Part shown: positions 44,613 to 61,530 of the stretch, one piece after another
Layout of the letters: each line of letters begins with the position of its first letter
How positions within the stretch are numbered: position 1 is the first letter of the stretch
Assembly: GCA_009103225.1 (NCBI GenBank)
Contig: RHPI01001507.1
Location: forward strand, 686,151 to 750,150
Reading direction: 5' to 3'
Source of the DNA: Chlorokybus atmophyticus
Taxonomy: Eukaryota > Plantae > Mesostigma and Chlorokybus algae
DNA: 64,000 bases
The notes under the pieces: model-generated
Seen by the model: the letters and a program-made list of their open reading frames with translations, nothing else
What the model was told of the DNA's origin: nothing
Databases searched by the model: none
Made by a program: the position numbers and the translations under genes

Positions 44613-46378
44613 CTATCCGCTGCGCGGCTCCCCCGCCTCTCCCGTCCTTCCCTCATCATCAACATCATCATCATCAACAACAACAACAACATCATCATCA
44701 TCATCAACATCATCATGAAAAATGGGGTCCGGTCGTAGCTGGCGGATGACAAACTTCGCAGCGCCTAGCGTCCTCCTGGTTGTTGCTTCCACGCGTGACA
44801 TCAACAGCACAATGCCCAATAGCTGGAGGTTGGGTCCGCCGCAAGCTTCCAAAATGTACTTAACTGCGTGCAGACTGATGCGCAGCTGCAGCGTGGCGGC
44901 ATCCTCATCTGTGAAAGACAGTTATAAGCAATGGCACAACTCAACAATCTAAACAAAGATTATACATACCTGTAGGATTCGACTTCGCCTCTCCCATGAC
45001 TAACCAACGCTGGTCAGCCTTAAGCAACACACCTCCTGCCGCATTAATCTCTAGTTGGCCCGAAACGTTCGGCGCCACTCTCTGTTGCCGCGCCACCTCC
45101 CACATTACAGCACTTAGTGCAGCACCATTACTGTCTGCAACCTCTGTACACAAGCAAGACAAGAGCGTAAGAACGGATGATAAACACCACGATAGGCCGA
45201 GTGTATCAACAAGAAGTAAACTCACGTTCTTGACCATAATTGCATGTGTAAACGAAGCGCTGGAACGTTCTGCGAACATCAGAGTTCAGGTGTTCCCCGA
45301 TCATGTCTTGCAAGTCTCCTGCAAGACCAGCAGCCTCCTTCATGCTGTGTAGCTCGAGCACACGCTGAAGTTGATGATACGTCTCTGTAACATCCGTGAG
45401 ATCCGGCACAGCGCGCCCCTTATTGGCTTTGATATGGGCAACGATCTGGTTTGTCGCAGCCTTAAGCGCCACTGGAAGGAAAGCAATGAAACCCTGCCGA
45501 ATTGCATCCTAAACAAGTTGTCACAGTCAGTAACAATCCAATGGCTGATCATTTAAGCAAAGAATTGAGTTCACACAACTTGAGCAAGCAACAATAAAGC
45601 TGTACTTGCCATGGCACTTACCACAGCAATCAATTTTGCAACCAAAGCAGCCTTGTTTGTTGGCAGGCCCCACTTGCCGCCATAAAACTCGAGAATCTTG
45701 TCAATATCAGAGAAGAGGCGGCCGTCACGGTACTTCTTCAACCGGCATTGTATGTTGGTGTAATTCTCCACCTCGCGACGAAAATACGCCATGACTTGAG
45801 ATTCGGCCATAATTCCGGAAGCTGCGACCAGTGCGGATGTGGCCTTCTGCTGGCTAAGAGATAACTGCTCCAGCTTCTCTATCCTGTCAAATGCCTTGGC
45901 AGCTTCCTGCCTGAACTTTTTGAACTGCCAGAAGCAACCGGACATGCTGAGAATCGGGCTTGACCAAGATTTGGTCAGACGGCCTAGCCTCACTTGAGGC
46001 TAGCCAACAAGAGAAGCATGTGCGTGTGATAGTGACGCACTTTTGATGCGTCACCATCACACGCAGGCATGCGTGTTAGCTAACTGTAACGCTACGAACA
46101 AGATTGCATGGTGGGCTTCCACTATTTGTAACCAATCACAGCAGCATGTAAACTGACTGAGTCATTGCCTGACGTACCCACTCTGGCGCGCCATCATCCT
46201 CTTCATTGGCGTCTCCCTCATTGGAGAAACTGAAACTAAGGGTATGATTCTGTCGGACCAACAAGGCCGGTGGCGCGGAACTTCTCAACGCAGGTCTTCT
46301 GCTGCTCCCAAGAGTGGTGCAACGGACCATCGCCGTGGCACTCTGCATCACACTTTGCATGCTGGCAGCTGACCGCAT
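44613..46378 (-). CDS. Putative organelle-targeted PD-(D/E)XK nuclease-fold protein, copy A (5 exons, 418 aa)
   Basis: Exons 46378-46178, 45924-45622, 45508-45226, 45143-44970 and 44908-44613. All introns are GT-AG with phases 0,0,1,1, giving an open frame of 1257 nt. Motifs include GIMAE, LEINAAGG..LVMGEAKS, DAATLQLRI and LLGIVLL. The gene model is well supported; the function call is weaker. Confidence 0.8.
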
Positions 46379-46527
46379 GAGTTAGAAAGGGTCAGTCAGT
46401 TGCTAGGTGGTTGCTGCACTGGAAGCAAGTGTGTCCAGGTCATAGTGCATAGCAGTCCATGCAGCTCACAACCAATCACCCACTAAACGGGTGCGTATTA
46501 CTGATGCAGAGGTGGTTGCAGCCAAAG

Positions 46528-46760
46528 GAGAGAGAGAGAGAGAGAGAGAGAGAGAGAGAGAGAGAGAGAGAGAGAGAGAGAGAGAGAGAGAGAGAGAGAG
46601 AGAGNAGAGAGAGAGAGAGAGAGAGAGAGAGAGAGAGAGAGAGAGAGAGAGAGAGAGAGAGAGAGAGAGAGAGAGAGAGAGAGAGAGAGAGAGAGAGAGA
46701 GAGAGAGAGAGAGAGAGAGAGAGAGAGAGAGAGAGAGAGAGAGAGAGAGAGAGAGAGAGA
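46528..46760. repeat. (AG)n microsatellite upstream of copy A ATG
   Basis: Direct observation; ~150 bp 5' of ATG 46378. Confidence 0.98.
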
Positions 46761-59400: not shown

Positions 59401-59744
59401 CGATATTATGTGTGACCATAAGCACAACGGCTTCTATACCAGAGCCGTAAGCAAATTGTGTTTATGCCATTTGTCACGGTGACAGAGCCTACCACAATTG
59501 TGCACTTCTGTGCAAACGTGTACGCTTGTGGTGCTGTCTCTCGTATGCAATGACTTTTGTATGCTCTGGGCAAGCATGCATTACAAATGTGTGCACATAA
59601 TGCATGCAATGCAAGCAGGAACAAGGTTAGCTTTATGCCAAGCTGCCAGTGTTTGGATGTGGCGGTTGACAAAAGTAACCAACTATATTCACATATACAT
59701 CTATAAAAACCACCCATCAACCCCGAATCAGCGCACTCTCGCCT

Positions 59745-61530
59745 ACGATTACCCACCGCGTGGCGCGCCCCCCTCCCCTTTCCTTCCCTCATCATCATGA
59801 TCAGTCTTTATTTAAACATAAGCATGCTCTTGTAAAAGGTTAGATTGGTTGACAGATCGACTACGAAAGATCATCATCATCATCATCATCAACATCATGA
59901 AAATGGGGTTCGGTTGTAGCTGGCGAATGACCAACTTTGCATCTCCTAGCGTTCTCTTGTTTGTTGCGTCCATGCATGACATTAACAACACGATGCTCAA
60001 TAGTTGGAGGCTAGGTCCGCCGCAAGCCCCGAAAATATAAAATCACCAGCAGACTTGTGCAGCAGCGTGGCGGCATCCTCATCTGATAAAGATAGTTATG
60101 AGCAATTGTACAACTTAGCAATCCAACTGATGATTATACATGCTTGTGAGATGCGACTCGTGACTTCGCCTGTCATGTCCAAGCGACTGCCGGACCTCAT
60201 GGATGTTATGGAGACGTACTACCAACTTTAGCGCGTGTTGGAGCTGCAAGGCATGAAGGAGGTTGCTAGCCTTGCAGGAGACTTGCAAGACATGATCGGG
60301 GAACACCTGAACTTCAATGCGCGCAGAACATTCCAGCGCTTCGTTTACACGTGCACTTATGGGCAAGAACGTGAGTTTACTTCTTGTTCATACACTCGGC
60401 CTACAAGAAGTAAACTCACGTTCTTGCCCATAAGTGCACGTGTAAACGAAGCGCTGGAATGTTCTGCGCGCATTGAAGTTCAGGTGTTCCCCGATCATGT
60501 CTTGCAAGTCTCCTGCAAGGCTAGCAGCCTCCTCCACTTGTAGCTCCAGCACGCGCTGAAGTTAGTGGTACGTCTCTGTAACATCCGTGACATCCGGCAC
60601 AGAGCGCCCCTTGTTGGCTTTGATATGGGCAACGATCTGGTTTGTCGTAGCCTTGAGCGCCACAGGAAGGAAGGCAATGGAACCCTGCCGAATTGCATCC
60701 TAAAGAAGTGATCACAGTCAGTAACCGTCCAATGGATGATCATTCAAGCAAAGAGTTGAGTTCACACAACTTGAGCAAGCAACAATAAAGCTGTACTTGC
60801 CATGGCACTTACCACAGCAATCAACTTTGCAACCAAAGCAGCCTTGTTTGTTGGCAGGCCCCACTTGCCGCCATAAAATTCGGGAATCTTGTCAACATCA
60901 GAGAAAAGGCGGCCGTTACTGTACTTCGTCAACCGGCAATGTATGTTGGTGTAGTTCTCCATCTCGCGAGGAAAATACGCCATGAGTTGAGATTCGGCCA
61001 TGAGTCCGGAAGCTGCGACCGGTGCGGATGTGGCCTTCTGCTGGCTAACAGATAACTGCTCCAGCTTCTCTATCCTGTCAAATGCCTTGGCAGCTTCCTG
61101 CCTGAACTTGTTGAACTGCCAGAAGCAACCGGCCATGCTAAGAATTGCGCTCGACAAAGCCTTGGTCAGACGGCTTAGCCTCAGTTGAGGCTAGCCAACA
61201 AGAGAAGCGTATGCGTGTTAGCTAACTGTAACGCTACGAACAAGATTGCATGGTGGGCTTCCACTATCTGTGACCAATCGCAGCAGCATGTAAACTGACT
61301 GAGTCATTGCCTTAACGTACCCACTGTGGCGCGCCATCATCCTCTTCATTAGAGTCTCCCCCATCGGAGAAACTGCAGCGTGGTACAAAGGTATGCTTGT
61401 TCTGTCGAACCAACAAGGCCGGTGGCGTGGAACTTTTCAACGCAGGTCTTCTGCTGCTCCTAAGAGTGGTGCAACGGACCATCGCCGTGGCACTCTGCGT
61501 CGCACTTTGCATGCTGGCAGCTGACCGCAT
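59745..61530 (-). pseudogene. Pseudogene copy D of the nuclease-fold family
   Basis: Exons 1-2 are open. Exon 3 has TAC CAC TAA plus a small deletion. Exon 4 is replaced by an inverted duplicate of exon 3. Exon 5 is frameshifted and carries a ~65-bp insertion. Confidence 0.9.
60188..60599. repeat. Long inverted repeat: ~200-bp arms, inner 124 bp perfect, 15-nt loop
   Basis: 60264-60387 is the exact reverse complement of 60403-60526 (checked base by base). The outer arms are diverged. Confidence 0.97.

Follow-up and report, generated by a model that had tools for sequence, protein, structure and literature searches.

What does the tandem gene array in a 64-kilobase (kb) stretch of the Chlorokybus atmophyticus genome (contig RHPI01001507.1; the whole 64,000 nucleotides are called the window below) encode, and could its products act on nucleic acid inside an organelle? 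The array lies on the minus strand at 44.0-63.9 kb and holds three copies (A, C and D) of one gene. In brief, gene A is expressed, A and C are intact and appear to be constrained, and D is a pseudogene. We suggest, at somewhat less than an even chance, that this is an expressed nuclear family whose proteins consist of an organelle-import presequence, a helical dimer region and a divergent PD-(D/E)XK-type domain.

Gene models and expression

Both intact genes have five coding exons. The four coding introns of gene A, spliced by hand on the minus strand, are GT..AG introns of 253, 113, 82 and 61 nucleotides (nt) in phases 0, 0, 1 and 1. Those of gene C measure 250, 138, 86 and 107 nt and are identical to the introns of A in position and phase. 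Transcript evidence comes from assembled contigs of two independent studies, X1 (2021) and X2 (2013), which were mapped beside the (CT)n repeat at 46606-46760. All four coding-intron joints of A are seen in spliced X1 and X2 contigs, and the skipped parts end in CT..AC on the plus strand. Since such intron-free contigs are only possible from RNA, gene A is transcribed and spliced. Its 3' untranslated region (UTR) extends to at least 44511.

The X2 contig also reveals a fifth intron. It departs from the genome at 46371 with a loose end of 133 letters, the first 30 of which are exactly 46825-46854; copy D differs from this loose end at two positions. The match, together with GT at 46821-46820 and AG at 46370-46369, places a 453-nt intron in the 5'UTR. 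An in-frame TAA spans the junction of the 5'UTR and exon 1, so that the first usable ATG is at 46360, and translation of gene A most likely starts there, giving a predicted protein of 412 amino acids (aa). An earlier note on this DNA, made from the sequence alone, had described A as a gene of 418 aa at 44613-46378. The five coding exons of that model are borne out by the spliced contigs, and its start is not: the ATG at 46378 lies inside the 5'UTR intron and is thus spliced out, and the gene has an additional 5'UTR exon. A 443-aa model of A with an acceptor at 45999 was also rejected, as the spliced contigs and copy C both place this acceptor at 45924. No protein search returned the protein of gene A, though its sister genes (Chlat1/8639 and others) were returned, and A is apparently missing from the JGI Chlat1 annotation.

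Gene C splices to a protein of 391 aa from five exons, as the earlier note had proposed. The JGI Chlorokybus model P0001 (456 aa, Chlat1/8639) includes this protein with a 98-100% match, and the start methionine of the 391-aa protein aligns with the third methionine of A. P0001 adds 65 N-terminal residues, drawn from two upstream exons (56495-56790). At the counterpart in A (47100-47150), the same ATG opens an upstream open reading frame (uORF) of only 8 codons, and an in-frame TAA stands before exon 1. Because the matching frame in A is closed by stops, we suggest that the 65-aa extension of the JGI model is probably 5'UTR. By the same comparison, A probably carries a short uORF.

The earlier note was also right in counting two intact genes and one pseudogene, in placing the introns of A and C at identical positions, and in expecting RNA to confirm the four introns. 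Pseudogene D carries a stop in exon 3 and has lost exon 4 to a replacement by other sequence (Table 1). By tblastn with the A protein, its truncated exon 5 is only 49% identical.

Selection and family range

Genes A and C are 64% identical at the protein level. By the Nei-Gojobori method, their synonymous divergence (dS) is 0.87 and their non-synonymous divergence (dN) is 0.20, with a dN/dS of 0.23 overall. The ratio is lowest in exon 4 (0.11), where 47 of 58 aa are identical and 22 synonymous differences stand against 13 non-synonymous ones; the core of exon 5 gives 0.14. These values indicate that the family is under purifying selection, as the earlier note had read from exon 4.

An index-free HMMER search with a profile of exon 2 against 1.84 billion representative proteins gave three relatives and one chance hit. 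All three relatives belong to EukProt/JGI Chlorokybus atmophyticus: Chlat1/8639, which is gene C, Chlat1/8100 (538 aa) and Chlat1/6616. The last is identical to Chlat1/23 over their overlap, and the family has two further loci in Chlorokybus beyond this window (Chlat1/8100, and Chlat1/6616 together with Chlat1/23). The members P0001, P0002 and P0005/P0003 are likewise all from Chlorokybus atmophyticus. P0003, modelled on a small contig of its own, is the P0005 protein minus an internal segment. The fourth hit of the exon-2 profile, P0004 (E 4.8e-4), is an unrelated repeat protein and was treated as chance.

The C-terminal domain was searched with word-indexed tools, and such searches with P0001, with an alignment of the C-terminal domain and with the full alignment gave no relatives outside Chlorokybus. 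Scans of metagenome and viral contigs gave none, nor did tblastn against phages. Contigs encoding P0002 and P0005 are not on record.

Based on these observations, we regard the genes as a birth-and-death family that has expanded in tandem and is so far known from the Chlorokybus lineage alone; the earlier note had likewise proposed a lineage-expanded birth-and-death family. Its intact loci number at least four, beside one pseudogene, and it has expanded through tandem segmental duplication accompanied by loss. It was found to match neither a transposon domain nor any described family; the same note had not recognised a described streptophyte family in it either.

Tandem duplication of the locus

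A tblastn search with the spliced A protein against the 64-kb window located A at 44616-46378, C at 54390-56095 and D at 59752-61530, with no other copies in the window. A fourth copy between 48 and 54 kb was searched for and not found. In a DNA self-comparison, A with its flanks (44048-47709) matches D with its flanks (59131-62741) at 74-92% identity, and 44687-47214 at A matches 54359-56856 around C at about 70-73%. The same comparison shows that the 'tail' between the units is repeated, at 48667-49816, 58625-59131 and 62750-63883. Because the duplicated unit includes the flanks, beyond the coding sequence, we read A, C and D as tandem segmental duplicates and not as products of transposition. 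The pattern of the array is that of unequal crossing-over. The inverted repeat inside D (Table 1) also appears in the self-comparison, as an inverted match to A at 45193-45408.

About 1.05 kb upstream of A (47710-48759) have no counterpart beside D (62741-62795). Either one copy gained this stretch by insertion or the other lost it by deletion, after the A/D duplication. The 5'UTR intron of all three copies contains a long (CT)n/(GA)n microsatellite with one N each (46540-46770, ~56300-56470 and ~61640-61790), and both the intron and its microsatellite have been retained through the duplications. CA/TG-rich imperfect microsatellite tracts flank the duplication units at 43600-44200, 49000-49300, 49800-50000 and 59000-59200; they translate as His-Thr or Cys-Val runs.

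Predicted protein architecture

In all four paralogues the N-terminus begins with 34-70 aa that hold no Asp or Glu, 4-9 Arg plus Lys, 16-28% Ser plus Thr and several prolines, and that are rich in Ala and Pro. The whole proteins are 10-14% acidic. The composition of a transit peptide, acid-free, net positive and rich in Ser, Thr and Ala, is found in each of the four. After the acid-free stretch come an acidic patch and a conserved E-P-x-W-F. The earlier note had pointed out the acid-free N-terminus of A, which is present, and had put the first acidic residue at position 54; in the 412-aa protein it is at 48. Such an N-terminus plausibly fits import into a plastid or a mitochondrion. The prolines and the low helical amphipathicity incline us towards the plastid. 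We suggest that this basic, hydroxyl-rich presequence would direct the protein to the plastid or, less likely, to the mitochondrion.

Exons 2 and 3 are helical throughout in an AlphaFold2 model of low confidence. In the helical region, of about 230 aa, a probable coiled coil comes first, and the region would promote dimerisation.

The last ~135 residues contain, in order, the helix A-A-L-S-A-V-M-W, the segment P-N-V-S-G-Q-L-E-I-N-A-A-G-G, a nine-residue turn, W-L-V-M-G-E-[A/S]-K-S, the helix D-A-A-x-L-Q-L and L-G-I-[V/I]-L-L, and they end in R-Q-L-R-P-D-P. All the motifs listed in the earlier note (GIMAE, LEINAAGG, LVMGE[A/S]KS, DAA.LQL, LGI[V/I]LL and an acidic tail) are present; LEINAAGG and LVMGE are separated by 9 residues, not by the 10 stated there. 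The E-I-N...G-E-x-K-S motif is kept in A, C and P0002 and is located in the most constrained exon, and the G-E of the predicted strand 3 is invariant in all paralogues. P0005 has L-K-V-D and G-E-A-T-S in place of L-E-I-N and G-E-A-K-S, that is Glu to Lys, Asn to Asp and Lys to Thr. The paired change of Glu to Lys and Lys to Thr is what is expected if both positions adjoin in a hairpin active site.

We suggest that these residues form an alpha/beta domain under the strongest constraint, which would most likely be a divergent PD-(D/E)XK nuclease-type fold. The predicted pattern is a helix, a G-Q-L-E-I-N strand, a hairpin, a G-E-x-K-S strand, a Q-bearing helix and a hydrophobic strand. The mature protein may then bind or cut nucleic acid inside the organelle.

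Tests of the PD-(D/E)XK fold

Language-model features from the ESM Atlas point towards this fold. For residues 116-435 of P0001, every Pfam-bearing cluster listed is of PD-(D/E)XK type, with scores of 0.88 for UL24, 0.82 for PDDEXK_3 and 0.81 for PDDEXK_1. With the C-terminal domain of P0001, 9 of the 10 best family-bearing feature hits belong to the same family or clan as the top one of them, and the list names UL24, DUF4866 (clan unchecked), PDDEXK_1/3/4/18, XisH, NucS_C and Cas4. With the C-terminal domain of P0002, which is 54% identical to that of P0001, all 10 of the 10 best do so, and Mrr_cat is now included. It is unlikely that a clan foreseen from the motif would appear three times by chance.

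Two Streptophyta clusters labelled 'hypothetical protein' (383 and 450 aa, with 94 and 84 members) lie closest to residues 116-435 in feature space, at 0.90. These could be distant plant relatives that were missed by the hidden Markov model searches.

A number of results weigh against a nuclease-type fold and an imported nuclease. Pfam gave no match for single exons or whole paralogues, and neither did NCBIfam, PADLOC or PHROGs, even at E<=10; sequence and profile searches of the PDB gave only chance-level hits (E 0.8-1.4). An hhalign comparison of the family domain with 79 YraN sequences gave a probability of 0.2%. AlphaFold2, run on a shallow family alignment, reached a mean predicted local distance difference test score (pLDDT) of 39.6 on the full-length protein and 45.1 on the domain, and showed no sheet in the motif region. 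Foldseek on this poor model gave no PDB match at E<=0.001, and its hits are meaningless. Within the motif, the canonical Asp is absent, with Glu/Asn of E-I-N in its place, the Glu of helix 1 varies (Val in P0002), and P0005 is without the motif Lys (K-V-D ... E-A-T). By the calibration of the tool itself, feature scores of 0.79-0.87 amount to a lead, and clan-consistent feature hit lists can arise from shuffled proteins as well. The predicted targeting, for its part, is drawn from composition only.

The PD-(D/E)XK fold called in the earlier note was thus not confirmed by the profile searches or by the comparison with YraN. On the positive side stand only the motif in the most constrained exon and the language-model neighbours, which we treat as a lead. 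Taken together, we give the C-terminal domain roughly an even chance of having the PD-(D/E)XK fold, and we put the chance of an active organelle nuclease well below that.

Alternative explanations

The main rival is an orphan organelle-targeted protein whose C-terminal domain has another or a new fold and no nuclease role, so that the E...ExK pattern would be coincidental. We consider this possible, if doubtful. It would account for the blank profile searches, the poor AlphaFold2 models and the variation of the supposed catalytic residues between paralogues, and it sits less well with PD-(D/E)XK feature neighbours that are reproducible for two paralogues only 54% identical, or with a motif placed in the most constrained exon. 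The domain might also derive from the PD-(D/E)XK fold and have no catalytic activity, serving on a helical dimer as a nucleic-acid-binding or protein-binding module, for example in an organelle nucleoid or RNA-binding factor. Inactive PD-(D/E)XK domains are common in the superfamily, and Asn/Glu at the canonical Asp position and the missing Lys of P0005 would suit such a module. However, Glu can replace Asp and residues migrate in active PD-(D/E)XK enzymes, and the strand-3 G-E is invariant, and we judge a non-catalytic module unlikely. The most specific form of the nuclease proposal holds that these are Chlorokybus-specific, organelle-imported nucleases of the PD-(D/E)XK type, dimerised by the coiled coil and with a Glu/Asn...E-x-K site, whose birth and death came about via organelle genome degradation, inheritance control or nuclear-organelle conflict; in all its parts together, this too is improbable.

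Two further explanations concern not the fold but the place of action and the origin of the copies. The basic N-terminus could serve as a disordered linker or a nuclear signal, or might not be translated at all, and the protein would then act in the nucleus or the cytosol. The JGI model of C begins 65 aa upstream and the start of A has already been shifted once, which leaves some room for this. Against it, four paralogues whose proteins are otherwise 10-14% acidic have all retained the acid-free, basic and hydroxylated stretch, and in A stops close the frame that corresponds to the upstream extension of C; we hold it to be quite unlikely that there is no import. It is more improbable still that the genes are the open reading frame of a mobile or selfish element copied by transposition. 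Several copies exist, dispersed as well as tandem, and nuclease folds are frequent in mobile elements, but the copies are few, those in the array are tandem segmental duplicates with flanks and inter-unit sequence in common, and each has five spliceosomal introns at conserved positions. Pfam searches of the exons and paralogues gave no transposase, integrase or reverse transcriptase match, and no terminal repeats flank the unit.

Comparison with known systems

The tentative reading of the C-terminal domain as a divergent PD-(D/E)XK fold invites comparison with several known groups. With the PD-(D/E)XK superfamily (Pfam CL0236, whose small stand-alone members include NucS_C, PDDEXK_1/3/18, XisH, Mrr_cat and Herpes_UL24) the Chlorokybus family shares the order of predicted elements, and the 20 residues between its two acidic residues are in the known range. 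Unlike its members, it has no significant match to the superfamily and carries Glu/Asn for the canonical Asp, and its domain follows a transit-like peptide and ~230 aa of helical region in eukaryotic, intron-rich genes of one algal genus. Among the Hjc-like nucleases of the YraN/UPF0102 family (PF02021), the G-E-I-D-L-I ... V-E-V-[KR] of YraN resembles G-Q-L-E-I-N ... G-E-A-K by eye, but the relationship is unsupported by the hhalign result given above.

The Crinkler/CR-REase effectors are reportedly eukaryotic and lineage-expanded proteins with a C-terminal toxin domain of the restriction-endonuclease fold. The Chlorokybus family is likewise eukaryotic and lineage-expanded, with a putative C-terminal domain of this type. 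In contrast, it has no Crinkler header, secretion signal or Pfam match, and its N-terminus resembles an organelle presequence.

Nuclear genes encode the OPR-RAP proteins of green algae and the FASTK proteins of animals, which are targeted to organelles and have undergone lineage-specific expansion; they combine a helical part at the N-terminus with a small PD-(D/E)XK-like domain at the C-terminus. The overall layout in Chlorokybus, a helical part and a small C-terminal domain behind an import-like signal, is similar. There is no RAP, FAST or OPR match in Pfam, and the motif differs from the RAP signature. We do not file the Chlorokybus family under PD-(D/E)XK, OPR-RAP/FASTK or CR-REase, as it bears the defining sequence characters of none of them.

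Features of the array and neighbouring genes

The features of the array are collected in Table 1.

Table 1. Positions of the features of the array in the window.
Feature	Position	Strand	Remarks
Tandem duplication unit around A: gene with flanks (44048-47709) and 'tail' (48760-49816)	44048-49816	.	Matches 59131-62741 and 62795-63883 around D
Gene A, 5'UTR exon	46822-46951	-	3' end at 46822 defined; at least 130 nt seen; loose end of X2 contig, GT donor at 46821-46820
Gene A, 5'UTR intron, 453 nt	46369-46821	-	GT..AG; holds the long (CT)n microsatellite; X2 contig and splice sites
Gene A, coding exon 1: predicted presequence and acidic patch	46178-46368	-	Start codon at 46360; in-frame TAA spans the exon junction; joint 45924/46178 in X1 contig
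Gene A, exon 2, 101 aa: predicted helical region with GIMAE and EFYGGKWG	45622-45924	-	Spliced contigs, alignment
Gene A, exon 3: predicted helical region	45226-45508	-	Spliced contigs, X1 and X2
Gene A, exon 4, most constrained: L-E-I-N-A-A-G-G ... G-E-A-K-S at about 44983-45054	44970-45143	-	Spliced contigs; dN/dS 0.11
Gene A, exon 5: predicted D-A-A-x-L-Q-L helix, LGIVLL strand, acidic Asp/Val repeat tail	44613-44908	-	Stop at 44613-44615; spliced contigs
Gene C, coding region, 391 aa	54318-56074	-	Exons 55919-56074, 55372-55668, 54951-55233, 54691-54864, 54318-54583; JGI Chlat1/8639
Pseudogene D	59752-61530	-	Exons 1 and 2 intact; stop in exon 3; exon 4 lost; exon 5 truncated and diverged
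Inverted repeat in D	60254-60536	.	Arms 60254-60387 and 60403-60536, 134 nt, 99% complementary; exon-3 sequence in place of exon 4

The genes around the array are ordinary nuclear genes. Pfam searches of the long open reading frames gave three neighbours, all on the minus strand: the alpha-glucan water dikinase GWD1 (Ig_N_CWD1, PPDK_N) at 24758-31256, a calcineurin-like metallophosphoesterase at 19802-20569 and, at 1533-2678, a THOC5-like match that is weak and falls short of the Pfam cut-off. A repeat of ~600 bp with 74% identity is found at 4664-5248 and 53341-53938, 48 kb apart, and may be a dispersed repetitive element.

Meaning for Chlorokybus

As it stands, the array adds an expressed, constrained and genus-restricted orphan family and a corrected gene model, with a fold that is beyond current tools. 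This is useful for annotation and will not surprise specialists. Chlorokybus is the streptophyte alga most distant from land plants, and molecular knowledge of nucleases that break down or police organelle genomes is, as far as we know, limited to a few. If the proteins were indeed active, organelle-imported nucleases, they would represent an enzyme specific to this lineage with organelle DNA or RNA as its substrate.

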